Assembly: GCA_965649765.1 (NCBI GenBank) | Contig: OZ287756.1 | Coordinates: 33,108,001-33,172,000, forward strand | DNA: 64,000 nucleotides | Reading direction: 5' to 3' | From: Bispira polyomma | Taxonomy: Eukaryota | Shown: piece after piece, positions 16,851-61,600 of the stretch | How positions within the stretch are numbered: the stretch's first letter is position 1 | Layout: every line of letters starts with the position of its first letter | Position numbers and translations under genes: made by a program | The notes under the pieces: generated by a model | The model's database searches: none | What the model was told of the DNA's origin: nothing | The model's input: only the letters and a program-made list of their open reading frames with translations

Positions 16851-18155
16851 TCAGTACTCATTTGTGGCTATGCTAGGTGATTTACACCCAATTGTGCCAG
16901 GTGCAATATATGGCTGGTCTAAGTGTGGCACATTAAAAAAGTCACAAACTTTATCTGTCTGTTCTTTAACCTCCATTGTAAATTCATCAAAACCGTACTT
17001 CTTCAAGGCATTCACACTTATTTGACTTCCCCTCTGTGAATCACGGCACATGGCTCTCTCAACGGCACCTGCATCAAATGGTAGATCGCAATGGTTGAAT
17101 ATTGCTTTGAAAAAATGAGTAGTGTTATCAATAAGATCTTCATATCGTATTCCAACAATATTCATGCCGCTGGTCCTAAAATCGATGTAGTATTTCACCA
17201 GTGAGGCCCATAAGATTGAGAAAGTGTGAAGTTTTGAAACTACTCTACAGTCAAACTGGTCTGACGGCAAGCCCATTTGAGTGACCATATATTGTGTTAG
17301 CTTAGATGACCGACGTCCAATGTGACATGCAAGTGCTCCCAAAGGCATTCCTTGAATTGCACGGGCCATAGATTTACATACTGCTAACCCATCTCTGTAC
17401 AAGAACATCTTGTATGATTCTGGAGCCACCTTAGAAAACATTGGTAACTCCATCATTAAAAGGGATTGCAATTTAAAGACATATGCCTGAATGGCCTTAC
17501 CATTAACTGGTTTGCACAAAAAAGCTAAGCAATCATGAACATATTGGAGCATGTCTTCTTCATTTAACACTCCTTTTAGTTGTGTTAATGCATTTAATGC
17601 ATCTGGTTCAGAATAAGCCATGCAGTAACCTGTTTCTTCAAATACTTGTGTCAGAATGGTAGACCCACATCTTGTAGTGTTTCCTATGAATATAATCTTT
17701 GCTTCAGGCAAGCCCAGTTTTTGTCCCAAAATATGGAACACATGGACAGGCATAATCAGCAGGCGCTGAGCAAGCTTCCATTGTGCCACCCTAAAGAATG
17801 ATCCTGCATCAGACCTACTAGGATCATCTCCTTGTCCAACCTCAATAAAAATGGCTTCCTTGTGGTTAATGGTGTATAAACTCACTTGGTTATTTAAAAC
17901 ATACTCAGGGTCCACAAAACATCTATGCCAGGTGATGAAGTTGTTGGATGCAGAAGATTGGGTTATAGGATCTACTTTGTGTCTGTGTAAGACATCGAGA
18001 ACTTGTACTGAACCCTTGTAGGAATGAACATGATGATTTTTGCGAATTCTGAAATAGGTTCCGCTGAAGAGCCACATAATTTGACGACATGAATTAAATA
18101 TTCCATAAAAACAAAGCCAAAGAAAATGCTTGAAGAAAAGTAACCAAAGACTCAT
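16851..18155 (-). CDS. Sulfotransferase-like protein, copy A (434 aa, CDS without introns)
   Basis: 5'-PSB-like loop IIFIGNTTRCGSTIL, SEP motif, 3'-PB-like FLYRDGLAVCKS, RYEDL, hydrophobic N-terminus. Frame is conserved in paralogs B and D. Confidence 0.85.
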   Translation of the reverse strand: MSLWLLFFKHFLWLCFYGIFNSCRQIMWLFSGTYFRIRKNHHVHSYKGSVQVLDVLHRHKVDPITQSSASNNFITWHRCFVDPEYVLNNQVSLYTINHKEAIFIEVGQGDDPSRSDAGSFFRVAQWKLAQRLLIMPVHVFHILGQKLGLPEAKIIFIGNTTRCGSTILTQVFEETGYCMAYSEPDALNALTQLKGVLNEEDMLQYVHDCLAFLCKPVNGKAIQAYVFKLQSLLMMELPMFSKVAPESYKMFLYRDGLAVCKSMARAIQGMPLGALACHIGRRSSKLTQYMVTQMGLPSDQFDCRVVSKLHTFSILWASLVKYYIDFRTSGMNIVGIRYEDLIDNTTHFFKAIFNHCDLPFDAGAVERAMCRDSQRGSQISVNALKKYGFDEFTMEVKEQTDKVCDFFNVPHLDQPYIAPGTIGCKSPSIATNEY

Positions 18156-20246
18156 TGTGAGATGTTGTTCATTTAGTTTCTTGCACTATGATGTAATCCA
18201 CTTTCTCCGATATTCTTTGCCCTAAAACAGTAAACAAATAGGTACATTATATAATACTATATAATGCAATATTTTAGATGTCTGTTTGCCTCCCACTCTT
18301 TATATCTCCTTAATTCCTTGAATAGTTATTTATATTTGTACCAAGATAAATAAATTGTACAAATTTCTGTACACAAATTAGTAGGTATAATTCAGACAAC
18401 GAATGACATAATTATTAAGCAACCATATTAATGATGGGATTTGATGAAATTGATTGAATTAGAGATGGGAAGTTGGGTAGTTAGAAATTACATGTCAACC
18501 ATCATATCTACCTTGATGGACAATGCTCTTTTAAAAAGTAACCTTGACTACTGTTGATCACTGTCCAACTAACCTTTCTCAAAAGCTGATTGGCTTTCTG
18601 TTATTTACCAAATGTTTAGGATAAATCAACAGTAGGAATCAGTTTATCGAACCGCGATTCATTTGAAAATCTGGATTAAACAGAACAAACTTATGTTGAC
18701 TAATTTTTAAACTTATTCCATATGACAATTTGCAACATGGGTGATAAACCGAAGATTTTATCGAAAGACTCAGCCATTGTGTTAAACTTCATCTAAAATT
18801 ATAAATAAGAAATACCCTTCCCTTTAATTTATTTTAAAACATTTATTGGTCTCACAAAAGCTAATTGTATCAACCTATTCATCAAGATAGTCCTTGCATA
18901 CAAGTCTAACTCTAACCAAATGTTAAAGACAGATTGCATCCGGAGGAGTCATGCATGTTCTGTTCACCAGAGATGAAAAATTTTACAGCCAAGCTTATTG
19001 GTCTTATAGCGAAAGCCAAATTTAATAAGGATGGATGAAAACAATGTAAACCACCAAGCTTATTGGTCTCATTACGACAGCAAGATTTAATAATGATGGA
19101 AAAAAGCACTGTAAACCACGTATCTACAGCAAGTACCTGACAAACTTACCCACATGAAGGAACAAATGGAATTCAAATCCACATTGGTGTTATGTCAAAG
19201 TTCAGCAGGAACTGACAGCAGTATACATATACTAAAAATAGGTAAGGCTAACTGCAATAGTTTTTCTGTGAAATTGTTAACATAGAAAATATCTCTATGC
19301 ACAGCAACAGTAGTGGCATAACTGTATGTAAACCAAAGTATGCACCGCTTCCATACTGGAAGTTTTATGCTGAAAGAGTGACCTACTGTAAGGATTAACA
19401 TCAACTGATTTCCACTATGTCTATATCATGTCAAAAATAAATTAAACTTAAATGTATTGGTTTTATACGTGATATTGTACCTTGAGAGTTTTCTGTCACA
19501 TCGCTGATCCTTTAATTTTACTTATGGTATGCAGGGCAGAGGAGTTATTTACTATAGCATATCATTGTAAATGTGTAACGGTAGCGAAAAAACAAAACCC
19601 TAAAATCGAGAAGAGGCAAGTAAAAACTGCATGGAATGAAAGATGAATGGCAACGTATTGTATAATAACCTTAAATGAATGTTGATCCTGGATATTTTTA
19701 CCTCACTGAGACATATAGGTAGTTTTTGAATATTTAACATCCATGTTTTCTAGCGAGAACCTGTTGGTGTATGTTCACATCATATCATGCTATGGGACTC
19801 ACTAGAGTTTGTGAGGTGGCTTTAGCCAGCATGCTCAGTCGGGGGTGAACCTTAAAACTCCACCACCATAGCCCTAGAAAGACTACTCTAAGAAAAGCAT
19901 TTTGTTTTGACAACAAGTGTAATATTATTCTTAATTGGCTAAAACACTCTCTACAAATCTCATTGGTTGATCTTGTGGGTCACTGCTTGTGTTGTGGGTA
20001 TTTTCCTCACTTTGAAATTACAAACTGAGGTATCAACAGCTATAGTCTGCTTAAATTGGACGCCATTGTACTATTTTAACATTTACAAACTTTTTAGTTG
20101 TGATACTGGACTATTTTATCATTTATTTGACTGTTCAAGTGTTTTATGATTGATACACACATTCATTTAAAACTAACTTAGACAATATATATACATATAA
20201 ATACGGCCAATAAATTGAGCCAGTGAAAAAGACCAAAAAAATTGTA

Positions 20247-21385
20247 ATGCCTAGTGTGAAGTGTACCGGCTGTGGAGGTAGACATTCGAGACCTGTGGGA
20301 AGACGATGCCTAGTGTTCAAACGGGCACAACGCGAGGCCAAGCAGGATGAATGGATTGACGACAGCGAGATTATTCAGGAAGAAGACCCGGATACAGGGC
20401 AATTACAGCTTCCGATACAGCTTCAACTCCAGTCACAGGGTGAGTCGCTTCCAACACCGGAAGTTACACAGAATGAGGTGAACTTAACAATATTGTCAGA
20501 ACTGAAAAAACTCAATAGTAGATTAGAGTTGGTTGAAAACAACCACACGGTGAACAGTAAAAGTGTAAGTGAAAGTACAAGTAAAAGTACAGCAGTAGTG
20601 ACCTCTAGTCCTAATATTAGCAGGGCTCAACTTAGTCAGGCGTGTAGTGGAGCAAGTGCCCCTGATGGTGATGCCATCATACCAGTCTCAATGTGATTAA
20701 ATCTAATGATATACAAGTTCAGGTAGATCAAAGGCTGCGTGAGCTTGCCCTACTCAATGCCCAGGATCCTTCAGGTAAAAATCAGATCAAATCCCAAAGG
20801 GGTGGTTCAGTAGATGTTTTTGTTAAAAAGCGTGTCAAGTGGCCTCACCAGCATGTACTGGGAGGCTCCACAAAAGATAGAATAACGTACAACCATCTCA
20901 CATTTTCTCAGTTTGTATTGGGTTTCACTCGTAGTATTCAAGAAGAAAGTAATGCTCAAACAAAAGATCAAATGTTAGATTATTTATGTGATCTGTTAGA
21001 AGATGTCCAGGACTTTTCTTGGCAAGCTGCCAAGAATAGCCATGCAATACTCCTTTGTCAAATGGAGGAAGGTAAGATAAAATTGTCTGACACCAACAAG
21101 ATTGACAGAGTACGTAGGGCACATGCCCAGAGACATGTAGTTGGTAGTAACACAGGTAGTAATTACTCCAAATCACAAACCAAAGATAGGAAAGCAGGCA
21201 CACCTTGTTTTAGATTTCAAAAGGGGACATGCAAATTTACCAAGGATCATGAAATGGGGAGCAAAAACTTAATACATGTGTGTGAGTCCTGCTTTGCTAT
21301 GGGTAAGTTGTTTAACCATCCTGACAAAGAGTGTAGGAACAGAAAGTATAATTCAAAAAACGGGGGAGGGCCAGCACCAAATTAG
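20247..21385 (+). pseudogene. Element 1 gag-like ORF1 (one frameshift near 20695)
   Basis: N-terminal C-x2-C-x3-H-x7-C (CTGCGGRHSRPVGRRC), coiled-coil ILSELKKLNSRLELVE, C-terminal Cys/His clusters. Confidence 0.8.
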
Positions 21386-21402
21386 GCGCTGGCTAAAATG
21401 GT

Positions 21403-24214
21403 ATGAAATATTGTAATGGACAGAGACACAGGTCAGATAGTGTATATAATCATGTAGAAGGTAGTAATACTGAAGTCAAGTATAGACAGTATGGTGATAG
21501 AATTGTGTATAGTACAGTCATACCTAATGTAAAAGTATTGCATAATAATCAGTTTTCAGGTGATTGGAGAGAAGCATATAGAAATGCAGGTCAAAAGCGC
21601 ACATATGCACAGGCCCTGAAGCAGGGCACACGTGGTAAGGGTGTTGTAGTCAGCCAGCAGCAAGCTCGGTGTGGGCGAAACTCTCCCACTAATAGAACAG
21701 CAAATGCCCTCAAAGTTACCAACCATAGCATATCTAAATCAGCTGTTTCAAATGGCACTAGCATTGACAACAACAAATGTCCAAGAAGGGGTGATATTAC
21801 AAAACCCCAAAGCTCCATGGCCAACAGTCACAATAAAACCCTCATTTGAGACAAACAGGTCCCACTGGCTAATCGTTTTACTCCCCTATTGTCGGCCCTG
21901 GAACAAGACGATGGTCATAACGAAGAAAGTGGGGAAAGGGGGGATGTGATTTTCTCAAAAGTAGCATAAATAATGACACTTATGGACAGATTGGCAGTGG
22001 CATAAAAAATCAACCAGCTTGTGTCACAACTCCATTTTTAGCACATAAAAGGCGCAACATGTATGACAATGGGGATAAGGATAAAGGGAAAACCACTTCT
22101 ATTCAGTGGGTGGAAAACAACTTCACACCTCCACAAAGTGACAAAGTTAGCAAAAGTACGGGTGTTTGTAATATGGGTAGTGAGGAGACTCGTACTCCAG
22201 GAAATAAAACCAACATTGTCATAAACACCATTGCATGGGGTAATAGTTCGGTTGCTTCAAGTGAATGTAACAAACAATGTCATGGTAATGGAACCACACA
22301 AGGCAAGGACCAAAAAGTAGTATGGCAGGGAAAATTAACACCACATGCCCCAGTATTTATCCCTAACAAAGTACTTTCCCCGGTTGACTTGCTAAACGTA
22401 GATGGCAAATACGAATTGCAATTCTTGAGTAAAACCAACACAAAAGATATTGCTCAGCTAGTGCAATGTAAAAAATTATACGACACTTGTATGTTTCAAA
22501 ACCCTCAAGGCTTTGGCTTTATACCATTGAGTGATTTTGTTAGAACCCAGCATCAGGTTAGTGTCCATACTGAGGATATACATGATCCCATACTCTTACA
22601 TGAAATGGTTAAGGCAACGGGGAAGTACAATTTTCAGCAGGCACGTTATCCTGTCAAATCCCAACTAAAGGTTGATAACTGGGAAAGGTACTTAGAGCAT
22701 TACTGGGATTCACAGTTGATTGATTTCATCAAATTTGGATTCCCCCTAGGCTTTGATAGGAATGTTGAACTTCAGTGTGACTTAAACAATCACACATCAG
22801 CTACCCAATATCCAGCACATGTAGATACATATCTAAATGAAGAATGTGGTTTTAATGCAATTATAGGTCCCTTTGCCACCAGTTCTATTACACAGCTTCA
22901 CTGCTCACCATTTATGACTCGGGAAAAACCAGGATCAGTAAATCGCAGGGTAATCATAGATCTGAGTTGGCCAGAAGGTGGTAGTGTAAATGGGGGTGTC
23001 CTGAAGGACTCCTACTTAGGTACTAAATTTATCCTCACATTTCCTTCAGTTGATAATATAGTAGAGCAAGTAAAGTCCTTTGGAAAGGGCTCACATATAT
23101 ACAAGATAGATATTTCTAGGGCATTTAGGCATGTCAAGATAGATCCCAAAGACTATGATTTGTTAGGCCTCTACTGGAAAGACTTCTATATTGACACATG
23201 TCTTCCCTTCGGGTCTAGGCATGGTAGCCAGATCTTTCAGAGAATTTGTGATGGAGTAAGGTATATCATGAGTAAAAATAACCACAAGATTATCAATTAT
23301 ATTGATGATTTAATAGGCTGTGGTGTACCCAGCAAAGCTAAGGCAGCATATGGCTTCCTGTACCAATTACTAGGTGAGTTAGGTCTTACTATCAGTGCAA
23401 AAAAAGTTAGTTTCACCAAGTACACAATGCATATGTTTAGGAGTACTAATTGACACTGTACAAGGTACCATTTCTATTCCTGTAGACAAATTAGAAATCA
23501 TAGTCAAAACTTGTGCCACTTGGCAGGATTTTGAGGTAACCACAAAAAGAAAACTGCAGTCATTATTAGGTTCTCTCTTATATGTCGCAAAATGCTACAA
23601 GCCAGCTCGCATTTTCCTGAACAGAATGTTGACTACTCTTAGAGCTGCTAGTAATCCGTATTGTACTAGATGAAGAATTCCACAGGGATGTCAACTGGTT
23701 TCAGTCTTTTCTAGCTCAGTACAACGGTGTCACCTTTTTTAACCACAAGCCGGTGGCTGCAGTCATTGAATTAGATGCATGTTTAACTGGGGTAGGGGCC
23801 AGGTATGGGGATAGGTTATACACTCTACCAATTCCCCAGTCCATGCAAGGCATCGGAATAGTCAGACTAGAGATGGTAAATATTGTGGTGGCTTTGAAGG
23901 TGTGGGGTAGTTACTGGAAAGACAGCAAAGTGGTTATCCGTTGTGACAATAGTGCAGAAGTATCAGTGTTAAACACAGGTAGGACTCGAGACAAATACCT
24001 TGCAGCTTGTGCAAGGAATGTATTTCTCCTTACAGCTAGGCACAACATAGACTTAAAAGTAGTGCACATTTTAGGCATTAATAATGCAGTGGCTGATACA
24101 CTATCCAGGTGGATGGGCTCCAAATCTCAGTGGCAAATAATAAACAGGCATGTTAATGATCCTGTTTGATGTGACCTTAAGCAAGAGGCCTTCCACCTGG
24201 ATTGGTCCATATAG
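21403..24214 (+). pseudogene. Element 1 pol: long low-complexity N-terminal region, RT and RNase H, with several frameshifts
   Basis: ORFs 21403-21849, 22059-23453, 23395-23673 and 23753-24169 carry consecutive RT/RNase H motifs (FGFPLGF, RRVIIDLSWP, KIDISRAFRH, YIDD, LQSLLGSL). Confidence 0.85.
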
Positions 24215-24230
24215 ATTAAACATTATTGTA

Positions 24231-25210
24231 GGTACTACTCCAGTCATGAAGGCCCTGACCACTGGCGCCATTGGGAGGCTCACAGGAGCATTCAGACCCT
24301 CTACACAACGAGCCTATACGGCTATGTTTAGAAACTTCTTAGGGTTTTGCTGCTTCACAGCTATTTCAGTGCATAGAATTACAGTCCATGTCTTATTGGC
24401 ATTCATGGAATTCTTGGCCTACAATAACACCTCTCCATCTCAGGTGGCCAATTACATGGCAGCTATTAAGTCCAGTTTATCAGTATATGGCCTACCAGTT
24501 CATGTGTTTTCGGATAATAGGATCAAATTGTTCCAAAAGTCATTGTTACTGAACAGACCACTCACTGTAAAAATGAAAGGCATATTCCAAGTGCAGCACT
24601 TGGAAAAAATTGTCCAGTTGTGTGACACTATGTTTATGGGTCAGGTGTATAAATCCATTTATTTGTTAGCATTTTTTGCTTTCTTTCATATTTCAAATCT
24701 AGTTCCACATGCAAATAAACCATTTGATCCATCGGTTCACCTGGCCAGAGGAGACATCTTTTTTGCTCCACCAGGGCTGCAAGTACTACTGAAATGGTCA
24801 AAGACCATGCAATCAAAGAATAAGGTTCAGCTAATTAAAGTTCCCTCACTAGGTGGGTCTCCAATATGTCCTGTGAGAGCAGTAAAAAATGTATTGTCCC
24901 TTACACCTCGGGAAAAAAATCACCAGTTATTCCAGATTAAGAAAGCAGGTGGTTGGAGTCCACTAAATGATAACATGGTTAGGCAACATTTGAAGAAAGT
25001 GGTATTGACTTTAGGGCTAGATCCTTCTACTCACCTCTTTCATACCTTCAGGCGTTCAGGTACCACCTTGGCATTCAACTCCAACTTCCAATACAACAGA
25101 TCCAAAAACATGGTACCTGGACGTCTGATTGCATCTGGAAATATATTGTAGACACCCAGGACTCAGCTACCCAGGTGGCCACTACCTTTCAAAATCTACT
25201 TTCTCAATAA
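24231..25210 (+). pseudogene. Element 1 tyrosine recombinase (first catalytic Arg replaced by His; frameshift before the W/Y motif)
   Basis: LKWSKT, CPVRA, HTFRRSG; HGTWTSDCIWKY lies in another frame. FFHISNL corresponds to FLRLSNI and FYRLASL in relatives. Confidence 0.88.
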
Positions 25211-27120
25211 TACTACCACTAGTTTGGTTGTTTGGTGGTTATTTATTTATGTTATACTACTACGGTCTAATATATCTTAAACTTTACATGTATAACTATT
25301 AATTCATAATGTACTACATAAGTACAGCTCTGGTTAGGTAACCAGAATAATTGTATACTAAAAATAATAGAACTTATATATATATATACAGTATACTAAA
25401 TATTAAGAACTAAAAATGCATGTATCGGCACCAGGTTCATCTTATTCAAATCAAACATCTTAAAATCAAATTTCAAATTTATTTCATATCAAAAACTTTC
25501 AAAATCAAACATTTTAAATCTTAACTAATTATATATATAATAATTCATAAAATTGGGAACCTGTTGGCTTTAAGTTAAGGTTCCCTCATACCTATGAGGT
25601 CACCTTAGCTTAAATAGAATAAGTAATATGGTGTGTAACTGTAACATAGTTAATTATTAAATATACTTACAATTGGCAACAGGTACCTTGCATTTATTCA
25701 TTAAACTCAAAAATTTTACAATTTCAATTAGCTAAGTAATTCATAATTCCCATTCTCAAAACCCATGGTACCTGGTGCCCTTGTTAGGGTGACCTTAGTC
25801 ATTTAAGGTCACCCTCCAAATGTTTTGTGTTGTACATAAAATGTAGTAGTAGTAAAATAAAATTTTATACCCGCAATACTCAGTGTACTCACTGGTCACT
25901 CAAGGTCACCCATAAACTGTTCGACAGAATAATTTGACAGAATAAACTCCTTATTTTTTTTATTAATGCAAACAATCTCCAAAGATATATTAAAATCATT
26001 ACAGCCAACTTAGCTCAGAAATCAATATAATTCACTGTACGTAAGTAAAGGGAAAACATGGACATGTCCTTGACATTATATGTTGGTCCTGTGATGGCTT
26101 CATTAACACTAAAATAGCAGCATTTTTGTGAGATTTTCTAAATACAAAAGGTGAACAGCGAAAAACCAATAATTTCGAATATTTACGACACATTAAGTGT
26201 GTTTAGAAGTATGATGTTACATATTTAGAATGATTTTCTATAGTTAACAACTCTGTCGCTAACAGTAACCCATAAAATAAAAAAGCAGATGTTTCCACGA
26301 CAGATGTTTACATATAAAGGTGAAATGTCAATCTATTGAGTTGGAATCAAAGCAGTACAATATAGCTACAAGAGTCGTCTTTTAAAAAAGGTACATGCGC
26401 ACAATGTGAAATATACTAACGTTGATATAGTAACTATATACTCAGACAGGGAGCACCTAATAGCAATATATCAGAATGAAAACAACAACAATATATCGAA
26501 CACTGCTCAATTTGTATTGGTTGATTGCTTCCAACCAATCCATAAAAGCCTTACATATAATTTCTAAGATGGCGATCTTTCTAAAATAAAAACAACATTA
26601 GTATACGCCTGATAAAAAACAGGCATTACTGGTTAGTCAGTGAATTTTACTACAGTACCAAATTTCACCAAAACCGATTTTATTGAATTTAATAATGTAA
26701 AATGTAATACGCATAAATGAGTTCCATTTCACAAAGTTAATGCCATATATTGTCAAAAAACGCCCAATGGCTAAATTCACTGACTGACAAGTAGAGATAA
26801 TTAACCAACCTGTACAGTACAAGTTAACAATCCACATCTGAGAAGTATCTTAAATTGAAGAGTATATCGTCTAATATGTCTTCATTACTGTCCCTCTACA
26901 TTTGTAAATCAACAATGGCCCAGATACTTGTTTTCCATATGAATAAGTAGGTGTGTATGTAAGATACACTATCCCAAAAAAAATCATTGGCCTCATAAAT
27001 AACACTTATGATTTATTTTTTTTATTTACAATTTAATAGGGAAAATATTCAAACACTGTCTAGTTGGCCTTTCGGCTCAGCATTGATTTGATTTAAATAA
27101 ATAATTTTTTGTTTTGTTTG

Positions 27121-39130: not shown

Positions 39131-41455
39131 GTTATCGGATGAATTTAATATTAATCAACTAGCAAAGAACATCAGACCATACATCATATTCTGTGATGGT
39201 GGTGCCATTCTCAATGGAAGAACCCTTTTCAAAATAAAAACAACATCAGGGTTTGTTATAAAAAACATGCGTTATTGGTCATCCAGTGTATTTTGCCAAC
39301 CAATACCGAATTTTACCATTCATAATAAACTACAGTTTATAAACAATTTTTTTTTTAATTCAGTGATGTAAATGTGTTGTAATATGCATTAAATAAATTA
39401 ACGTTGTATGTTGTCAAAAACGTCAAATGGTGAAATTAACTGGCCGGCGAAATTCAGTGGCTCACCAGTACACAATTAACTAACCTAAACCTGCACTAGT
39501 TAACAATCCACATCTGTAGTAGTTACAGCAATACTGAAAAGTATTTCAAATTAAACAGGAAATATCCTCTAATGTTTCTCCATAAGTGGCCCCCCACATA
39601 TGCAAATCAACAATGGCACACATACTTGTTTATCTCATGATTAAGTAGGCTTCTGTATATAAGACACACTATCCCTCAAAATCATTGGCCTCATAGATAA
39701 CACTTACAATTACTTTTTTTATTTATAATTTAATAGCAAAGATATTTTAGCACTGGCCTTTCCACTCTGCATTGATTTTACATGAATAAATAAAATTATT
39801 AGGAGAAGTTAATTGGGTAAACTAGTGCATGATTTACTGCTGTATATAATAGTTACAGCTTCTCTTAATTTTTCCTTGTATTAACACAATTACTTGAGGC
39901 AATGTATCTAATTTACATGGACCATCGGTGCCTCTTTACAATACCAATGGATATGGGTGAGAGTCAGAACTTTTTGGAGGAGAGGGTACCATTATAAAGT
40001 TTAACCATATCAGTGAGAAAAAAAACACAATCATCGATTTTTAAGATCTATAGTATATCCCACCAGTACATTGATCCATTTTTAAGATCTATAGTATATA
40101 CCACCAGTATTTTTTGTGTGACTACTGCAGCACATAAAATAAACTAGACTTTGCCCAAGTATTTGTAAATGTATAGGGAGCCTTTTGATGTAGATCTGAT
40201 ATATAAACAAACATAACAGACAAAAACTTAGATATTTTTGCATAGAGCCACAAATGTAAACAAAATATAATATCCCACAATATTCCCAACTAATGTTTTG
40301 GTTGTCAATCTACAACTTTGGGGATACAGATTTGTTTATTACCCAACAGGCACATCAGTTTAATGTTGAATCAAAGAGTGAAATCACAGTTGGTGTCAGG
40401 GTAAAATGCGAATGGAAATTATAGTCAGTATCCGACTTTGATTTTAGGTTGAAGCAACGTTAAATTCAGGTCGAAACAGCATTGATTTCCGGTTGCAACA
40501 ACATTGATTTCAGGTTGAAATAACATTGATTTGAGGATTAACTCATGTTGATTTCTGGTTGAAACCATGCTTTTCTTTTGATAAAAATTCAATTAACAAT
40601 ATAGTATGTCTTCCAAAATGTATGTATAAAAAAATTAACTCCTCACCAGATTAAAACAATATACAGCACTCAGTACACCACAAATGTATCAGCAAAACAA
40701 TTAAGGTAAGTAAACCTGGTGCTAACAATCTTTGATCGTTTGTAACACAGCAATGAATATCTTCATTTAAGCTCATTAAAGCTCCACTCCATTGTTAATT
40801 ACTATTCTTATTTAACAAAGGATGCTCATCAAAATGAAAACCAGAATTATCAAGTTGTGGTCTCATATAAACAACTTTAATCAAGCAGTTATATTAAGTT
40901 ATTTTGACCAAATACTTTTCATTTTAAACTGTTGGTTTCTGGTATTTATTTTTGTTCAATGTCGACAACCAAATATCAACCTGGTGTCTACGTCAACAGT
41001 AAAAATATGAATTTATAGAACAGTTTCCCAAAGCTGCACCATTGAGCGTTGAGGAAGGTAAGTGAACACGGGTAAGTATGAAGAACACCATGTGTAAACA
41101 TTTGGGTATTTTATTACAACACATAAAATATATATATATATATACATACTTCCTACGTAACCTCTAGAGTTAAGGTCACCTTAAGCTAAGGTTGCTTTTC
41201 CTTGTGAGGTGAGTAAGGTGACCTTAATCCCAGGGATTCCTAAACTTAAAACTTAAGGTTAATATAACTAAGGCCATCTTAAGGCGACCTTAACTTAGGG
41301 GTTTTTCCTAGCTGTCTGTCAATTGAGGTTAACCCTTAAGGAGGCCCTAAACCGGCTACTACTATTTGTTAGTACTACTACACACACTATCTATTTACAC
41401 TATTTGTATATGTTGTATATAATTATATGACTAAAAGCCAAACCCAAAAGTAGTG

Positions 41456-42438
41456 TTATTTTGTTGTCGTTGTAGCTAAATGGGAGGAGAAAGTATTGGC
41501 AACTAGACCTGCAGCTGTTGGGGTCTTCACCAAGTACCGCCATATGGCGTCAGAGCGCCAACCCCCATGGACCTTGATGTACTGTAACTCCACATTATGA
41601 TCGAAGGCCCAGGAGGCCCCTGATCTACGTAGTGCGTGAAACCCGAACTCCCGTGGGTTCAAACCCACTAGCTGCACTGCTGACCTAAAGACTTTCCTGA
41701 CCTGATAAGCTGTGATTATTGTTTTGACATTCTGATGCGTGAACTGAAATAATGCTTCCTTATTGGAAGTGTTCTGAGGGAGATAGGCTCTAAGTGCTGT
41801 TGTGGGACATAAAGGTGACCCCGGAATGAGAGGAATCTGTACCACTTGGACCTGACCCGACACCTGCATGTTTTTCGCACTTTTACTGATGATGTGGGCC
41901 CCAGGGGACCCCCAAATCACATCCTCTTGTGTGGGGAGTCTCGATGGCTGAAACATTGAGGCTCTGTTTGGGACTAATGAGGCCAGCCGATAAAACCCAA
42001 AGAACCCTAACAGCACAATGGACTTATATACCTGGTGGCCAGGGAATCCTTTAATTTGTAGGACCAGCTGCTGCAGCTTGGTAACTGAAAAAAACCCCTT
42101 TACTCTACACCTCAAAGGGGCATTGTTTGAAACAGATTTGACCATAAGGGCTATCTTCTTATGAGCCAAAACCTGTGTGGGGAAATCATATATTTGGAAG
42201 TAATGCTTAATTACACTAATGTAACCCATGATTGTTTGGGCTCTGAGACCCTGCTGAGCCAGGAACTCGACAAATAATAAGATGGACTGCAGTTCAAAAG
42301 GAGAGTTGATCTGTAGATGTGACAAAAAGCTGTGAACAACATAAACTTTGCCTGGTAGGCTGTGGATGTTCTAGGGCGAAACCCTGTAGCTACTCGTGTG
42401 TTGACATCCCTCATTAACTTCCTGGCCAGAGCTGAACC
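41456..42438 (-). pseudogene. Element 2 tyrosine recombinase (catalytic residues intact; one frameshift near 42325)
   Basis: GFYRLASL (R), HALRRSGA (HxxR), HGGWRSDAIWRY (W, Y). The N-terminal FRPRTSTAY is in ORF 42211-42450. Confidence 0.9.
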
Positions 42439-42446
42439 TACAATGT

Positions 42447-44112
42447 TCAAATATCATAGTTAGGGACTAGCCAGGCTATGTCCACGGGAACCCATGCACA
42501 TGTTTTGAGGAAGGCAACTTGAGTCTTATTAATATTTTTGTAATGATCCCATCTGGACAGTATATCTGCGTAAATGTTATCCACACCCCTAATGTGCTCA
42601 ACTTTTAATTCAATATTATGTTTTGCCTGGAGGAGCCAGAGGGTCCTAGCGCATGCTGTTAAGAAAGTATCCCTACATTTAAACTTATTGAGGACATGCA
42701 CCACTGCCAAATTGTCACAGTGTATGCAGATTGTTTGGTCTACCCACTTTCCCCCCAAGCCTTAAAAGCCACAATGATATTAATCATCTCGAAGTGGACA
42801 ATACTAAGATTGTTTACATAAGACTCAGGAATGTTAATGGCATATACATTGTTTCCCCAAAACGCCCCTAAACCTTTAAGGGAGGCGTCAACAAAAACAT
42901 GTTGTACTGCGTGTTGACTTCCATGAATAGCAGTGACCCCATTGTACTCTTCTAAAAAGGCACAACACCAATTAACGTCCTTGTGAAAGCCCTCAGTGAG
43001 GGGAACCGACACGTTTGGGGGGGTGCCCCTTAGTACTTCTAAAATTCTGTTCACAAACAATCTCGCGGGCTTGACACATCGGTGCACAAAGATTAATTTG
43101 CCTAGTAATTTTTGTAAACCTCTCCTGGTTGCGTGAGTTCTGCTCTGCCAGGCGAGACATATTTGTTTTACTTCATAAAGCTTTCGTTCCGGTATGGTCA
43201 GCACGCCCGTTCTCGCATTAATATTAATTCCCAGACAAGTCATACTCGTGGTGGGTGCATCGACCTTGTCTTGGTTGATGGGAAGACCGAGTGTTGTTAT
43301 TAAATTCTTTAGTACGGTGAAACCTTGGTTAGCCTTTCCCGGATACGCAATACCGATACAGTCGTCTAAGTATGAGCATACCCAGTGGCCGTTCTTATGC
43401 ATTAAATATGTGACGCAATCGGTGGCCATCTGGCACGCGCATGCGCCCGACTTGAGGCCGAAGGGAACACTAATATCAACATAGTATTGTTGCTTCCATT
43501 TAAGTCCCAACACTGGGTAGTCTAAAGGATCGGATCTCAAATTTCTATATGCTCTTTTTAAATTAATTTTATAAAGTAAACAATCTGGGCCTAACAAGGC
43601 TATTTTCTGCACTATATCATCAATTGTAGGGTACTTGAGCTGAAATTCAATTCCATCAAACACATCTGAAGGGATACATGAATTAACACTTTTGCTTTTG
43701 GGCCAGGAAAGGTCGACAATAATTCTTCTAGAGCCATCTGGCTTGTCTCTAGACATGAGTGGTGAAATATGTAGTCTATCAAAAGGGATGTTTTCTAAAG
43801 GGCCAACTATAGCCTTATACTGGACCTCTGTTTGAAAATACGCTTCTACTGCCTGGGGATAATTAACCGCCGAGGAGTGGTTCTCTGCCTGTAAATTATA
43901 CTGAAAAGGCTCTCATATTTAATTGGGAGGGAACCGGAAGCCTTGCCCCTTTGTAATTGGGAATCCCCCTTTTTTCTACTATTGAGTGAGATTGTTTAAC
44001 CCATTCAATCATGTCACCACTCCCCACCATGTTTTTCCTATGATCTCTTACTTGGGGTTGGCATTTAACACCTGTCATTGGGATAAATCCCCTCAACCAT
44101 TCTGTGACATCA

Positions 44113-44145
<33 letters not shown>

Positions 44146-44834
44146 TTCAGTGTGAGAAGGGAGGCCTCTGTGATACTGGGGTAATTGGCTGCCTTTGTTT
44201 CTACTGTACTATGTACCTGAAGGTGGTCTGTGTTCCCTCCAAATTGACCCTGTTCAATAGCTGTGGTAAGATTAAAGGACTGACTAAAGGAACTGTCTAT
44301 GCTGTGACCCTGATATGAGGAATTCCTTATACTATATTCAGTGCTGTAAATATAGCTACTGTATAAACACGTGTCTAAATTGGCCCTGTGCGCCATGTTT
44401 AAACTGTGTAAACGTAAACTTTGATCTGAACAGACCCCTGGTTTACAACTTGTCACATCTATCATACTTTGCTCTGACCTTACTGAAACCCTGTTTATAC
44501 CTGAAACGTCAAAGACACTGTCACCATATAAACCACTATTACTGTTACCTATTACACTGCTACTGCCTAGTATCGATACAATTTTGCTATCACTATGACT
44601 GTCAGTACTGTTACTGGCATTATGACTGACTACTTTGTGGTTTGCTACTATGTCCTCATACCAGACTCTGTAACTGTTGTCACTATTAACACTGTTCATA
44701 TGTGGTTGCACACCTTGGCATAGATTATCTGTATTACGTCTATCCGTGTCTATAGAATGGTTATACTCGACTTTTACTACTCTGTGAATATTCTCCCTGA
44801 CAGGGCGTTCAGCCCCGGATACCTTTTGTGTCAA
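42447..44834 (-). pseudogene. Element 2 pol (RT and RNase H), frameshifted, with a ~25-27 codon deletion near 43905
   Basis: VPFGLKSG, YLDD, VDAS, HFEMIN, CDN, ADILSR. The W...FGFPL segment present in element 1 and the 32-kb remnant is missing. Confidence 0.87.
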
Positions 44835-44989
44835 TCTGACACCAATTACATTGGCAATGGCCGATATGTTGGTTAAACCAGAATTTACTGTTCATTATGC
44901 AATGGGTACATAAGCAGTGTTTTGAATGAAAAGAACTAGGTATCTGAGGGGCCGTGCTAACCGTACTGCCAGGAAGAGTATTTAAACTA

Positions 44990-46204
44990 TCAAACCCTCT
45001 GATCAGCCCTATCCTGATCTTTGTGACCCCCATTTTTTATTTTCCTATTGCATTTGCTCTCTGAATTCTCATAATTTCTGTTCACCGCTTTGTAGCAATA
45101 GCCACAAGTGTGTTTCAATAATTTTCCCCCCTCATAATGCTCCCCTTCAAATTTACAGGCTCCTTTTGCATACTTAAAACACACGTTAACTTTGTTAGAC
45201 TGTTCCCTTGGCATTGAACTCCCATTACTTCCTGTATCAACCGTTTTGATTGCCCTCTGCGTGAATCTCTGCCTGATCCTGTCGATTTCACTGAGATTAT
45301 CCCATGTGACCGAGCCCCGTTCAATTTCCGACAGTACTGCTGCATGCGCGCGTTTCGCTGTGGGCCACGATAGCTCAATGGCGTCTTGCATCAGCAAGTA
45401 TTGATATTGCATCATGTTCCTGCGCACCTTTTCATCCGGCTCCTGAACCACACACCTAGCGAAGCCCTGCACCCATTGGAATATTGTTAGCTCTTCATAA
45501 GTCGGCAGTTTCATGTTATCATTGAGCATGCAATGCTCATGGGGCCAAGAAACCGCAACACGTACTCTTTGGTCACCCAACAGATACCGCCCTGACTTAA
45601 TTCCCTTCTTTTTTACAGTACCTGAAACCTCCTCGCGGGACATGTCATCGTACAGGCGTAGACGTCTGTCGACTTCGTCCTGGACCTCAGAATCTGAGCG
45701 TAGGAAATCTAATGTGGGTAATTTCTGCACTGGTGACGTTTCTCGAGCACGACGCTCCCGACTGGCACCCTGTCCCTTGCGTGCCTTGGGAAAGCTATGT
45801 GCTGAGGGCTTGGAGGTGATAGAAAAGCCGCTTTCCCCTCGCCTTTCCTGGTGACTCACCCGTTGCTCCAAGTCTGTGAATCTCTCCAGCACCTGGTCTA
45901 ATTGGCTCATAACGTCTGCGTTACATACTCGTTTGGGTGTTTTCTTCCTTGATCTTCTCCCTACTATCTCCTCTTGTGATTGCGTATCTTCAGCTGGTCC
46001 GTCCGACGTCATGTTGGGTCTTGACTGTGGAACAGTGGAAGTACCTGGCTCCCTAGCCCTAGCTGCTTCCGAATCCGTGGAGGATATTGAGTGATTCCCC
46101 TTTTCCCCTGTACACAGGTCCCCTACTGGACCTGTGTGCTTAGATTTGCACACCAAACACATTTCTCTAGTTTTACTCCTGGTGTTATGTATCCTGGGTC
46201 CCAT
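44990..46204 (-). CDS. Element 2 gag-like ORF1 (404 aa, intact)
   Basis: CLVCKSKHTGPVGDLC zinc-knuckle-like N-terminus, coiled coil, WPHEH, C-terminal CFKYAKGACKFEGEH and CGYC; homologous to element 1 gag. Confidence 0.85.
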   Translation of the reverse strand: MGPRIHNTRSKTREMCLVCKSKHTGPVGDLCTGEKGNHSISSTDSEAARAREPGTSTVPQSRPNMTSDGPAEDTQSQEEIVGRRSRKKTPKRVCNADVMSQLDQVLERFTDLEQRVSHQERRGESGFSITSKPSAHSFPKARKGQGASRERRARETSPVQKLPTLDFLRSDSEVQDEVDRRLRLYDDMSREEVSGTVKKKGIKSGRYLLGDQRVRVAVSWPHEHCMLNDNMKLPTYEELTIFQWVQGFARCVVQEPDEKVRRNMMQYQYLLMQDAIELSWPTAKRAHAAVLSEIERGSVTWDNLSEIDRIRQRFTQRAIKTVDTGSNGSSMPREQSNKVNVCFKYAKGACKFEGEHYEGGKLLKHTCGYCYKAVNRNYENSESKCNRKIKNGGHKDQDRADQRV

Positions 46205-47169
46205 ATTGCAATTGTATCAATTGGGTTTGTTGTACAGTTAACACGTAAACAAATAAAACATATGTTGTGTAAAAAGCAACTTTAAAAACAACTTATAAAA
46301 CTGTGTATATGTCCAGAGAATTAAAACTTTTTGCTTGTACACCCACCAACTTGAAATTCACAATGAAGAGCTTGGGGGTTGTTTACTAGGAAAGCTAAAG
46401 TTTTGGCAGGAAAGCATTGTTCCCCTTAATTGTGGTCTTAATGAATTGTTTGCCACCTTATGCCCCCTGTCTGGGTGACACTTGTTTTACCAGAGAATTT
46501 ACCTTGTCACTATACTGTTGACATGTGTGTCCCCTGTTCTGGGTGATACTCATTTGATAACATAAAGAAATTTAGTCATACCGTCCTCATGTAGGACAGG
46601 GCCAGCTTAGGCAACTGATAACTGATGCTGCCTAATCCACGCATTCAACCTAATATATGGAATTGAGGTTGATATTGGGTTGTCAACGTCGACAACCCAA
46701 TATTAACCTCAATTCTAAGTTGAAATCAGGTTGTGTGCCCGCTGGTTAACTACTTGTTTTAGTAAGATACCAGTTAGTTATAAAAAATACAAATGAGTGC
46801 TTATGGCAAGAAAGCTTATTTTATTGCGATTATTGTGCTTTTTGTTTCCTTAAAATCCAAAGAGAAATAGGTGTGATATTTCAGATTAAATAAGGAAGAG
46901 CGTCAGGGACATTGAAGGAACAGCGTAAACAGCGTACGGTGCAGTATCTATGGTGTTTCTAATTTATATATTACGCAAAAGACATGTTTTCCAACTATAT
47001 CCATTAACATTTAATAATTCATTATTAAGGATTCACATGCACACATGGATTTTCTCCAACCTTTAACCTTAAAATGGGTAACCTATTGGTTACATATGTA
47101 CATACCATTAAACAGTCAATAGAAGATATTACAATAAAAATGCCTTGCATTATATTACCAAATGTACCA

Positions 47170-52092: not shown

Positions 52093-52860
52093 AAGGAACT
52101 ATTTTATAGCATACTGGAGTACATGTGGAGACAGTAAACTTTAAACAGAATTGTGCACTTCGGATTTACCGATAGCAGTGTTTTGACCACCTCATGCATG
52201 ATTTGGCCTGTAAAGAGATGGTCTAACCTATATTTTTAATTTAGTGATTTAAACATACCATTTCAAGCTTGATTTTGTATAAACAGTGCTCCAACGTTAT
52301 ATATTTGTGTATTTCTTTCAGAAAAAGTGACTTAAAAATATAATTATGCCTAAAAAGACTAATGTGATGTGTAAAAAATGCTTCAAAAGGCATTTCCCAA
52401 CCACATGGAAGAAATGTCAGCAATTTGATGACGACCAAGACGAGGGCTTCACTAGATGGTACGGCTGAAGGTGCTGTGAGATAGAATGACTCAGATTCGC
52501 TTGGGGCATAGTCAGAAGAGGAACCAGACTTGCAAGTGCAAATACTACAGGAATTAAAGAAGGTCAGCAGTAGTCTGGATCAAGTAGAAGAACAAGCGGC
52601 TGGTAGTAGACATAAAGGAATGACAAAGCTTAGAGCTAAGGACAAATACCAGCTAAGTAACTTTCTTGTTCAAGTAAAAGAACAAAAGTGAGTATAGACA
52701 GTGCGAGTAAAGAATCAAGTAGTGATAGTGATTCACTGTGTAGCAGGTAATGTAAACTGAAATCAAAAAGGGGGGAAAATTTTGATGTTGTGGTGAAATG
52801 TAAAGTGGCTTGGCCTTATGAGGCGATTCTAGAGGGTTCAAGTAGACAAAGAATAAGTTG
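52093..52860 (+). mobile_element. Decayed YR-element 5' fragment (gag N-half) abutting the truncation of pseudogene C
   Basis: MPKKTNVMCKKCFKRHFPTTWKKC at ~52346, LQVQILQELKKVSSSLDQVE, KSKRG..FDVVVKCKVAWP; homologous to element 1 gag. Confidence 0.78.
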
Positions 52861-54702
52861 TGATCAGTTATCTCTCATCCAGTGGGTGGAGAGATTTTGT
52901 AGAAATATTTAAGAAGAAAAAATTATTGGAAAATTTATTGGAAATTAATTAACTAGCTAAACTTGACAGGTAGCCAGACTGAGAACTGACATGACTATGC
53001 ACAAGTTCAATTCATCCTTGAATTCACATTAATGCACCGTCTATAGCTTATGTAACATGTTTCATGTTTATAATATATGTTTCCATGCTCAAAAGTAAAT
53101 GACAAAATAAAATCTCAAATAATACACAGATGTTGTCAAAAATAATTTGAAGATACAGATTAAAGTTAATTTTAAAAGTTACACATACTTTTGTTTGATA
53201 AGTTTTGTTTCTATTAGTTTGATCTTAGACTTGCACAAGTTTGCTACAGCTTTGTGGTATCAATCACGGCAGTCAGTTTACTGGTGGTGGAGAGCAGTTA
53301 AAATCTTTTACCCCCAAAAGTGGCTAGCTAAAAATCATTCAACATTGCAGCACCTATCGAGTGGAATAGTTTCGCTACTAGTATTTGCAATGAGATAAAC
53401 ATTGCAGGTTTCAGGAAAAAGCTCAAAACACATTTGTATCAACTTGCTTGACCCCCTAACGGTCGTCACCTCATCAGGACTGAACTCAAACCATAAACCT
53501 TTTCTCCAATCGAACAATTCTTTTGCTTATTGATTGTGATGTGTGACATAGAGGGTGCCCTGTCATCCCCCCTGTGTGTTATAAAAGTAAAACCATTAAC
53601 ATTAAAACTTGGGTTGTGTATTATTAAATTATAAAACTCACGAAAAGGAATAGTCAGCAGGATCATTTTGTAATGCTTTCATTTGATTTTGGGTTTAACA
53701 TCCTTTTCAACACATTTGATATGTGCTTTGAATTCTTTTATTATAATATTTAGTCACAACTCGTGCAGTTTTATTATTGTATGACACATTTACAAAGGAT
53801 TTTTAAGAAGTCCATGTATGGCTAGAATGTATACTTTTCTTTTTGAGTCTGTGTATGTGATAATTTACTGACCAGGTAGATATTCCAGATCACAATTGAC
53901 AGATGTCCATGCAACATGTATTAACTCAATATGTGCAATTACAAAAAATAAATGCTTTAATTATCTGATAAAATTGAACATAAAATAATAATTACAATTT
54001 AATTTTAACCTAAAAGTGTCATTTTAATAAAATTTCAATGTTTACATTTATAATAAAGTACTAGAGCAACCACTAGACTTTAAATTTAACTACAGAAAGT
54101 GTTAAAAATCACCAAAACCCAAAAATCAGGGTTTAAGTTGTGCCATGAGCCCATTTATATCCTTTCAAACTTTCTTTATAATAGCCACAACATTTATTAT
54201 CACTATTCTTTTCACAAGATTTCTTCTGACACATACACCAGCATTACATTGGATACCAGTCATTAAAGTTTAGACATAATTAACTCACCATGACATTACA
54301 CTTTTATGTCCAGCAATATTACCTTTGATGCATGATAGTATTGACAGATCATACACTTTTCATGCATCCAATATTAAACGTTTTTAAATAATCATGTGAA
54401 ATTGTTTACATATAATACACTTCACAAATAAAAACAATTTATCAAATAAATATATTGTCAATACAAATATCATGCACCTAAAATATTATAGCGTTATTGT
54501 ATGGAACATTTGACCTTCCAAAGGTAATATTCGGGTCCAATCATAATCCTGTACATTTTTAAACAGAGAACGGGAGACTGTACAGATAAGATAAGCAGTC
54601 CAAAAGCACTACTCAAAGAATGTATCAAAGAACAAAACACAATGAACAGCATTTAATAGCGTTGATAGTAAGCATACTTAAAAGTCAAATTGACCAGTCG
54701 GA

Positions 54703-58611: not shown

Positions 58612-61600
58612 ATAGCAAGTCCACTTTAGGAGACTGCTAGTTCAGTCCAATCCCACTTTATTATAACACTACCTTGTGAATGCCAGAGCATTATCCAACT
58701 GTCTGTCCTAATGCAGCTATGTCCAATCACAGTGCTAGCTACTAGTGACCCCTAAGCTAACATAGCTATCCTCCAAATTGAATTTGTATTTTTACCTGTG
58801 AACAGGACATTGAAGAGAATTGTAATTTTAAGCACATACTTTTACTGAATCGTTTTTATTTCTACTTTTTATTATTTTTATTACTATTTAACGTGGTATG
58901 TGAACTACTAGTTGATTGTGCAATATAGGAAGAATAAAAGTAACACCCGTGTTGAGTGCGTGAAAGAGGACTACAAGAACAGCTTCTACAAGGAAAGCTA
59001 AGAAAGGGGGAGCCAGTCAGGTAATTACGAGTACTCATGACCAAATAGAACTCTCTAACGTTGCTGGTGTTTTCACCATGTCTCCCTCTCTAGATCATTG
59101 TTTGCTAGCTAATCCAGATGGACTACCCGGTCATGCTGAATTTTCACCCCAGGCGATGACCCAGTACCCCAACTGCAAGCCGAATCCCAGAATATGTCCG
59201 AGATGTTGACGATATTACGTAGCCTGGAGAACTCCAATGCAAGTATAACCAAATGGCTTCAACTCATTGAGGACAGGCAGGAACTGTTACACCTGCCAAT
59301 TCTCTGTTGCATGCGATGAGAGATATTACGGTGGTCCAACAGAGAAACGAGGGTTATTCTCTACCGCTCCCCCCCCCCCAGGTACAATGGGGTCGTGCAA
59401 CATCAACAAGTTCCACTACCGGTTCAATCAACAACAGAACACATTTCCAACATGAAGGGCATCATTCCCAATCTGGATGCACTGGGATCCTTCCGTCACG
59501 TGCAGGCGGCTGATACCAGGCAGCTTGCGGACTACGAGGTCCTGGCTCAGAGGGGCCTAGCTCAGGGTAAGCATACAGTAAAGCAAAAATCTGGGCATTT
59601 TAATTCCATTACATTCGCCGACCCCAAACTCAGATGGTCGAATGGAGGTTGGGGTTGGGGGTCAGCTAGTCGCAGGCCAGCTTTTGATGACCTCACAATG
59701 CCACAGTGGGCAGCAGGCCAGCTGGCCAATGCACTACAAGTAAGTGACCCAAAGCTATGGTGAACCAAATGGGACACTCTCTGTAGGATGCAGCCACACT
59801 ACCATGACGTGTAGTCAGGACAGCCTGGGCCCTCAGTATGCATGAGGCTGAGGAGAGCAGGCTGTCCTGGCAGGACAACAAATGATGTGCATTGAATTGT
59901 ATCAGTGCCTCTCAAACTGGTCCCATTGTACTCACCAGGAATAGAGACAGGCGTTTTTCAGGTTATTTCTACATGTTTCATGATGTGACTGTTGTTAGCT
60001 TTATTTATACTAGTGCTGAATTTCCACTCAGCCAAGAGCTTTGTATTATTCAAATTTTTCAAACCATAATTGTGATTCAGGCCGTTTTATTTAATGTCAC
60101 TGATGACAGCAATGTGGAAATACACCACCAAACTGTGGCTGAATGAGCAGCTGATTCATTTTATTATTTTAAAAGGGATAATACTTCTATCAAACGTCAA
60201 ACGATGACTTTACCCAAATGGTCGGCAATGTTCAAAACAAGTAAGGGTTATAACAAAGAAGTTAAGGACAATAATGACCCAGATAAAACAATGGGTTTCT
60301 TAGTATTTTCCTTAGTATTGAATTTACATTTATAGGACCTGACAGACCACCTTGAAAAATTGGCCTTTGTCATCAGGGATACTGCACTCCCCAATTATAG
60401 ACTATCTAGAGTGCCCCTCCTATCAGGACTAAACATAGATGCTTGGGAAGATATTTTTAAAGATTACCCTGACAAACTGCTTTGTTAGTATATAAAATTT
60501 AATTTTCCGTTTTCCCTTACAAATCCTGAAAATCTTAACAATTATGTTACTAATCACTATTCTTCCCTCCAGCACACAAGTAGTGTTGAAGAATATTTGG
60601 ATAAAGAAAGAAATAAGGGTGCCATGTTTTGCTATTCGACGACTACATTTGGATCCCCCCAGGGTTATGAAATTTTGACTAAACTGCTGGATTATCTAGG
60701 TCTTCCCATGAACATGAACAAATGCACTCCACCTACGAGATGTATGCCATGCCATATTTTAATGTTTTCAGCAGAGTTGACCATAGTTCACTTTGAAATG
60801 CTAAACGCTATTCTTGCGTTGTGCATTTTGGCGTTAAAGTGGGGGCATCAACGTATTTTGTTTCACTGTGAAAACAAGGCCGTAGTACTAGTTGGGAACA
60901 CACAAAAAATACAATTTTCCTGCTTAATGCTTGAGGAACATTTCGCTTATAGCAGCAACTTAACCATTAATATACAACACATCCCAGGGATAAATAGTGT
61001 TATTGCAGATGCACTTTAAGTCTATTTTCAGATAAACCTTCCAATGCAGACTTAACTTTTAAACTACAGAATTGTTACAAATGGATCCTTTAAAATACAT
61101 TGTCCTGGCATCATCTGTGTAATTTCATGTTCTACCAGTTCCACTCACACACTCATTCAGTCAGCTTGCAACAGAATTGGCTTAGCACTACAACCAAATG
61201 CAACATCAGCTTACCAATTCAAGACATTCCTAGCTTTTTTACATGTTGCAGGCTTGAAACACATTAACGTTTCATCAGTTCTGGCCTTTTCAGAATACTT
61301 GGTACAGAATAGCGTTTCACCGTCTGTGATTGGCAATTGCCTTTCATCACTCTAATTCATGGCTAACAAACTACATTGGAACATGTCTCCATTCACACAC
61401 AATTCTGTTTCTTTGTTCACTAGGGGTATCACCATTAACCCCACTTTACGGCCTGAACCCAAGGCATTTTTAGACACAATTGACAGATATATTAAGCGTG
61501 TCAAATATTGCTAGATCCAGTACTTTTAGGGCCATATTTCTACTAGCCTATTTTGGCTTGTTGAGGTTGTCCAACTTGGCATCTCATTCTAGGGTATCAT

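Follow-up and report, generated by a model that had tools for sequence, protein, structure and literature searches.

The DNA analysed here, hereafter the window, is a stretch of 64,000 nucleotides (nt) of contig OZ287756.1 (positions 33,108,001 to 33,172,000 of the forward strand) from the 1.04 Gb assembly GCA_965649765.1 of Bispira polyomma, and its content comprises two long retroelements (elements 1 and 2; E1 and E2) and two gag fragments. In both long elements the genes are ordered gag, reverse transcriptase/RNase H (RT/RH), and tyrosine recombinase (YR). Here we address how the YR of these elements is expressed, and conclude from comparative sequence analysis that it is probably translated from spliced RNA and fused to the N-terminal half of Gag, through the joining of a splice donor within gag to an acceptor at the beginning of YR. 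Features of the window are summarized in Table 1.

Table 1. Elements and predicted splice features of the window. Position 1 is the first letter of the window; here and in the text a slash within a motif marks a predicted exon-intron boundary.
Feature	Position	Strand	Remarks
Element 1, decayed Ngaro-like copy (gag, RT/RH, YR)	19803..25920	+	at least 8 near full-length relatives elsewhere in the genome, 97-98% identity
Exon-exon scar in 5' leader of E1	20168..20169	+	window copy lacks exactly 927 nt present in most family copies
E1 predicted exon 1, coding part (Gag N-half from gag ATG, CX2CX3HX7C knuckle)	20249..20774	+	frame broken near 20690
E1 predicted splice donor CAG/GTAAAA, GT 20775-76	20772..20780	+	phase 1, Gly codon
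E1 predicted intron, 3,457 nt (gag C-half, RT, RNase H)	20775..24231	+	
E1 predicted splice acceptor region ending TTATTGTAG, AG 24230-31	24205..24231	+	phase 1; family RH stop TAG 24213-15 inside
E1 predicted exon 2 (tyrosine recombinase)	24232..25151	+	frame broken near 25085
Element 2, decayed copy of a second family	41100..46300	-	pol and YR broken
E2 predicted exon 1, coding part (Gag residues 1-194 plus 1 nt)	45622..46204	-	
E2 predicted splice donor CAG/GTACTG, GT 45621-20	45616..45624	-	phase 1, invariant Gly195
E2 predicted splice acceptor region ending ACATTGTAG, AG 42439-38	42438..42465	-	CTAAC branch-like motif upstream; RH stop TGA 42449-47
E2 predicted exon 2 (tyrosine recombinase)	41456..42437	-	frame break ~42213-42325
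Truncated gag fragment, third family	52347..52900	+	donor-like CAG/GTAATG, GT 52747
Decayed gag fragment, fourth family	59080..59900	+	donor-like AGG/GTAAGC, GT 59567

A Pfam scan matched RVT_1 in both long elements (E 5.5e-12 and 3.6e-9), as well as in relatives, and RT_RNaseH in both long elements, the match being weak in E1. The Phage_integrase match in E2 scored 27.0 bits, 0.1 under the cut-off of 27.1, and the E1 YR matched SAM-like N-domains at scores under the Pfam cut-offs; YR homologues in protein databases number 3,675, many of which carry PF00589. Because the gag, RT/RH, YR order occurs without a methyltransferase domain (no methyltransferase family was returned by the Pfam scan of the window elements), both long elements are classified by sequence within the DIRS order as Ngaro-like. 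Their two families are young, each having many copies elsewhere in the genome at 95-98% identity. Both window copies are decayed: in E1 the frames are broken near 20690, 21940, 23400, 23660, and 25085, and in E2 breaks occur in pol and within YR, the gag open reading frame (ORF) of 404 amino acids (aa; 46204-44990, minus strand) being intact.

An earlier, sequence-only reading of the window had proposed that a splice takes out the C-terminal half of gag together with RT/RH, so that YR continues the frame of Gag(N). On recheck, its coordinates for the four donor-like GT sites (20775, 45621 on the minus strand, 52747, and 59567) and for the two acceptor AGs (24230-24231, and 42439-42438 on the minus strand) are correct, all six sites are in phase 1, and the local joins in both long elements are in frame as given there. 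A GT lies directly 3' of the AG at both window acceptors, and a Gly codon is cut after its first base at each predicted junction. That reading also placed the acceptor just after the RNase H stop; the proximity to the stop stands, but only the window copy of E1 has its stop at 24167-69, as family contigs and two truncated copies (L028 and L029) carry G at 24169 and the family RH frame runs to the TAG at 24213-15, 15 nt before the AG. Branch-like motifs read by eye are CTAAC in E2, TTAAC in L041, and CTAAT in L039. Donor and acceptor are identical in every copy of the element-1 family, which says little because these copies are 98% identical. At greater divergence, L026 (80% identity to E1) retains CAGGTAAAA next to synonymous changes and L023 (84% identity) retains TGTAGGT.

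The acceptor was followed through 12 curated elements and through the 48 loci returned by a YR profile scan of metagenome contigs, of which 33 include the YR N-terminus. In all 12 curated elements a pyrimidine tract ends in a phase-1 YAG 19-21 codons before the conserved FRP motif, followed in intact copies by 322-328 open codons. The 33 metagenome loci all have a phase-1 YAG as well, preceded by a tract with a pyrimidine content of 0.59-0.82, and YAG counts by phase in the same metagenome search windows are 46/14/13. In E2 and L031-L035, the RH stop itself falls in the pyrimidine-rich stretch, 2-8 nt before the acceptor. A conserved dedicated ATG for YR, which the sequence-only reading had regarded as incompatible with its proposal, was not seen in these elements and loci: the stretch from the upstream stop to the acceptor is free of in-frame ATGs in 8 of the 12 curated elements and 24 of the 33 metagenome loci (32/45 overall). 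The first ATG past the acceptor comes only at codon 55-141, inside the conserved YR core, in 7/12 curated elements, and 13/33 metagenome loci have an ATG neither before the acceptor nor within 30 codons after it. N-terminal extensions of YR ORFs called in databases are not conserved.

One way to express such a frame without splicing would be for ribosomes to enter it from pol, through a frameshift or through termination-reinitiation at the RNase H stop. The RH stop indeed lies 2-16 nt before the start of the YR frame in the window families and their close relatives, and YR ORFs have been described as possibly frameshifted and overlapping pol (PMC3783388; PMC3266345). The RH-YR offset, however, changes from +1 in E1 to -1 in E2 and L031-L035, the doubly open overlap lacks a slippery site and can shrink to two codons, and L041 and L042 have a pol-YR spacer of 370-500 nt with stops in the YR frame. 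Since the offset is not conserved and the spacer of L041 and L042 is long and closed, frameshifting fails as a general route, and we consider it extremely improbable that YR is expressed in this manner.

Conservation of the donor was evaluated across diverged gags. The E2 gag has 19 database homologues at 40-55% identity, for seven of which DNA was taken (L031-L037), and further DNA came from three E1-like elements and from L041, a distant full element from a Logan contig. The Gly at the donor site is invariant among 13 aligned Gag proteins, and a phase-1 donor is found at the homologous Gly in E1, E2, the two window fragments, L026, L031-L038, L040, and L041. The site reads (C or A)AG/GTACGT in six of L031-L037, CAG/GTGCGT in L032, AAG/GTAATC in L040, AAG/GTAAGA in L041, and CAG/GCAAGT in L038; metagenome elements L044, L046, and L047 have a donor at the same place. 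In an 8-sequence gag codon alignment whose four-fold sites are saturated (mean pairwise identity 0.33), the three-codon donor window ranks 1/321 for third-position conservation, so that conservation at this site exceeds what the protein requires, a check that the sequence-only reading had suggested. In that alignment the codon before the Gly always ends in A despite encoding five different residues (S, A, P, K, T), and the Gly codon is always GGT; the codon after the Gly is ACG or GCG, followed by T, in 7/8 members of the E2 clade. Over 13 gag lineages, an A-ending preceding codon has P ~1e-4 against a background use of 0.40, and GGT, present in 12/13, has P ~5e-6 against a background use of 0.30. 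The GGT codon given by the sequence-only reading, for which free synonymous variation was named as a point against splicing, thus stands in all lineages but L038, where the codon is GGC and, with the following AAGT, fits the consensus of GC-type donors. The proposal that the arrangement is conserved across divergent YR retroelements is borne out by the 13 gag lineages sharing a phase-1 donor and by the acceptor in 12/12 curated elements and 33/33 metagenome loci. This donor/acceptor pattern is far beyond chance.

It could nonetheless be asked whether these motifs only resemble splice sites and owe their conservation to something else, for example codon bias, a signal for recombination or packaging, or a structure in the RNA or DNA. 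Consistent with this, the junction was seen in no RNA, and donor-like AG/GTR strings occur 2-6 times per gag by chance. Yet what the families share is only the generic spliceosomal consensus (GTAAAA, GTAAGA, GTACGT, GTGAGC, or GCAAGT at the donor; a pyrimidine tract and YAG at the acceptor) and no specific sequence, both sites are always in phase 1, and the YR frame depends on a start supplied from upstream, all of which make a constraint unrelated to splicing very improbable.

Evidence that transcripts of these elements are spliced comes from the 5' leader. Most copies of the element-1 family contain a 920/927-nt GT-AG intron that would fall between 20168 and 20169 of the window (L002:543-1469, and the corresponding position of L003, L005-L007, L009, L010, L012, L017, and L022), with internal tandem repeats of ~215 nt and the sequence ATTT/GTACGTG/GTAAGTG ... 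TTGTTTCAG/AAAACT. From the window copy 927 nt are gone, with TTT/GTACGT as donor, and from L018, L020, L025, and L026 920 nt are gone, with GTG/GTAAGT as donor and the same acceptor as in the window copy; precise loss is therefore found in five copies, with two donors 7 nt apart and one common acceptor. No target-site duplication was found at the leader-intron site. A tree of the downstream 1.8 kb places the window copy inside the intron-bearing copies (98/94 support) and L020 also among them, and because both nest in this way the losses are derived and recurrent. An origin of the intron-free copies from spliced RNA fits best with these data, and the nesting of the window copy indicates that RNA of the element-1 family has been spliced and retro-copied. 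As judged from these genomic copies, the leader intron shows that the host spliceosome acts on element-1 family transcripts; it does not in itself demonstrate the gag-YR splice. Splicing and retro-copying of the leader are newly found in the present analysis, and imply that spliced element RNAs are reverse-transcribed and inserted in nature, which bears on the choice of template in replication.

The same leader raises the question of whether the YR acceptor is real but is paired with a different 5' exon, namely one ending at a leader donor, the arrangement of most retroviral env messages, or a spliced leader added in trans, in which case YR would start at its own AUG or at a non-AUG codon and carry no part of Gag. 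The intron-free retro-copies reveal two working donors in element-1 family leaders, and E1, E2, and L034 have an ATG 5-8 codons past the acceptor. This ATG is, however, lost in L023 (24247, ATG to TTA), and the late first ATG of 7/12 elements and the 13/33 metagenome loci that have none nearby on either side also speak against it. Pairing with a leader donor would not explain why the gag donor ranks first for synonymous conservation and matches the acceptor in phase, and we regard this alternative as unlikely.

Several results weigh against a Gag(N)-YR fusion made by splicing. The search of sequencing runs found no RNA run with the element, hence no RNA junction was seen, and the three matching runs (X1-X3) yielded DNA-like contigs with even cover and no gag-YR joint. 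When the genome was searched exon by exon (21/22 places for the E1 exons and 23/40 for those of E2, with 40 of 94 candidates scored for the E2 exon-2 query), no processed exon 1-exon 2 copy of either family was found among the candidates scored; where an exon-1 place has a partner, that partner is 3.0-4.6 kb off. All 48 metagenome loci are likewise unspliced. Leader-spliced copies, in contrast, do exist in the element-1 family. No Gag-YR fusion was present among the 150 best representatives of an exhaustive protein search or in two word-index searches (longest match 420 aa), and none of the 19 matches from the E2 gag database search has a YR domain; the missing fusion protein is a weak negative, because nearly all database entries are ORF calls on genomic contigs. 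The donor position is not fixed in the deepest clades, where a phase-1 donor occurs 8-30 codons further on, after a WPH motif (AAG/GTACGN in L058, L066, and L068; CAG/GTGAGC in L061, L067, L069, and L072); sequences there are few, and 1-2 phase-1 sites per gag arise by chance. Finally, in-frame ATGs fall within the RH/YR overlap of E1-like elements (24150 in E1; also in L038, L039, and L040), and two independent 5'-truncated copies with unrelated flanks (L028:1501 and L029:2557) both start at 24146, 4 nt before the ATG at 24150.

These last two observations favour translation of YR without splicing, either from its own ATG on a subgenomic RNA transcribed from a promoter within the element or from full-length RNA on which ribosomes initiate internally. 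The shared 24146 start may represent the 5' end of an internal RNA or a preferred stop of reverse transcription; 24146 was also considered as a splice acceptor, and was rejected because the AG is retained in both truncated copies. A leader of 4 nt would be poor for initiation, and the overlap ATGs stand at non-homologous places and are absent from most curated elements and metagenome loci, as detailed above. Neither the unconserved N-terminal extensions of called YR ORFs nor the universal pyrimidine tract with a YAG in a single phase would be accounted for by an internal start, which we hold to be quite improbable.

Fusion of YR to the N-half of Gag by splicing, as the sequence-only reading had proposed, is thus supported by conservation of the donor, a universal and phase-matched acceptor, the absence of a conserved YR ATG, and an RH-YR offset that is not conserved. 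Under the proposed mechanism, full-length RNA would serve as genome and as Gag message. The pol frame overlaps the end of gag by 16-120 nt (L031-L034, L038, L040, and L041), and its first Met lies at codon 55-267 in most elements; because pol overlaps gag without an early Met, Gag-Pol is likely to be made by ribosomal frameshifting. A fraction of the RNA would be spliced by the host spliceosome from the donor in the Gly codon of the Gag linker to the acceptor just past the RNase H stop, removing the C-half of gag and all of RT/RH (~3.2-3.5 kb; 3,184 nt in E2) and bringing the start-codon-less YR frame of ~320 codons into phase with the gag ATG upstream of it. The resulting protein would combine the Gag N-half, with its CX2CX3HX7C knuckle, disordered stretches, and two long helices, with the tyrosine recombinase. 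Suboptimal sites (GTACGT and GTAAAA donors, and modest pyrimidine tracts in the two window families) could set the ratio of spliced to unspliced RNA, and the fusion could load YR into the particle and adjust its ratio to RT.

An AlphaFold model of the E2 Gag (mean pLDDT 61) is compatible with such a division of the protein. In it, the conserved CX2CX3HX7C motif folds as a knuckle-like hairpin and residues 95-124 and 171-188 are helical, and the donor Gly195 falls in a disordered linker (residues 187-210, pLDDT<50) followed by a confident helical domain (211-323) and a zinc-finger-like end. Since Gly195 lies in the linker before the folded domain, the splice would exchange the folded C-domain of Gag for the recombinase at a module boundary, and it is plausible from the model that the common N-half lets the fusion follow Gag or the RNA. 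More broadly, we lean towards the view that a splicing-made Gag(N)-recombinase fusion is the ancestral and general mode of YR expression in Ngaro-type elements of many animal and protist hosts, in which the N-terminal knuckle-and-helix module of Gag would be a shared adaptor that brings the recombinase to the RNA or particle to which the capsid-forming part of Gag is also tied.

Retroviruses are known to make spliced subgenomic messages, some of which borrow the start of gag. In avian leukosis/sarcoma virus, the unspliced RNA is the genome and the gag-pol message, and splicing from a donor inside gag places the AUG and first codons of gag in frame before env, which has no usable start of its own; the six Gag codons donated form part of the signal peptide. 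The elements described here are similar in that a splice would donate the gag start to a start-less downstream gene, YR having no start of its own and phase 1 being found at both sites in all elements. They differ in that ~170-210 Gag residues with a zinc knuckle and helices would be donated, and in that the recipient is an integration enzyme rather than an envelope protein. Spliced messages for foamy virus pol and Drosophila copia gag likewise set the structural to enzymatic ratio by splicing and not by frameshifting alone. Unlike the fusion predicted here, these messages produce unfused Pol or Gag alone, and we know of no Gag-enzyme fusion made by splicing in either system.

Ngaro retrotransposons, which belong to the DIRS order, were described by Goodwin and Poulter (2004, as cited in PMC9210276 and PMC3266345), and the window elements resemble them in the order of gag, RT/RNase H, and YR, in having no methyltransferase domain, and in their animal hosts. 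In the published descriptions covered here, the YR of Ngaro elements is a separate or overlapping ORF and no splicing is mentioned, unlike what we propose here. The DIRS-order literature covered contains no description of splicing for YR expression; this coverage is of work after the founding Ngaro papers, in which a passing earlier remark is possible. Dictyostelium DIRS-1 is likewise a tyrosine-recombinase retrotransposon, and its spliced RNA was shown, with an artificial intron marker, to be reverse-transcribed and inserted, a process of which the leader-intron-free copies found here are the natural counterpart; it differs in having inverted terminal repeats, a methyltransferase domain, and overlapping ORFs, and no natural intron has been reported for its YR expression (PMC7192593).

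Published accounts of recombinase expression in the DIRS order stop at 'separate or overlapping ORFs'. A conserved splice, if true, would explain YR ORFs that have no start codon, and pol would in effect be the intron of a second gene. Annotation should in that case treat YR as exon 2 of a gag-initiated gene, with a predicted protein of ~500-530 residues linking nucleic-acid binding to recombination, and a single junction PCR would provide a handle on when and where the elements are active.

With respect to the ends and derivatives of E1, a split direct repeat check of window 19500-27000 found no terminal repeats of at least 25 nt. In L003 (7230-7485) and L011 (5228-5483), the 3' end (25920) is followed by a second copy of 256 nt from the 5' end of the element (window 19803-20058), which may correspond to the A1/A2 repeat of Ngaro elements or to a tandem junction; it is absent from the other copies, including the window copy. 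The only long joint in the matched sequencing runs (X2) connects 19863 to 24285, that is, the first 60 nt to the YR region, and has CA..CA ends; it was classed as a deletion derivative of E1, not a splice, and also occurs at G000:C3:79312091-79313006. L014 is another copy with an internal deletion, extending from the leader intron to 22933.

E2 contains a poly-G patch (window 44110-44140, minus strand) in which ~30 G stand in place of ~80 nt present in other family copies (query positions 2387-2394), and which may represent a deletion private to this copy or an artefact of sequencing or assembly. Elsewhere in the window, minus-strand ORFs of 434 aa (16851-18155 and 34287-35591) and 443 aa (54703-56034) are probably copies of another repeat family.

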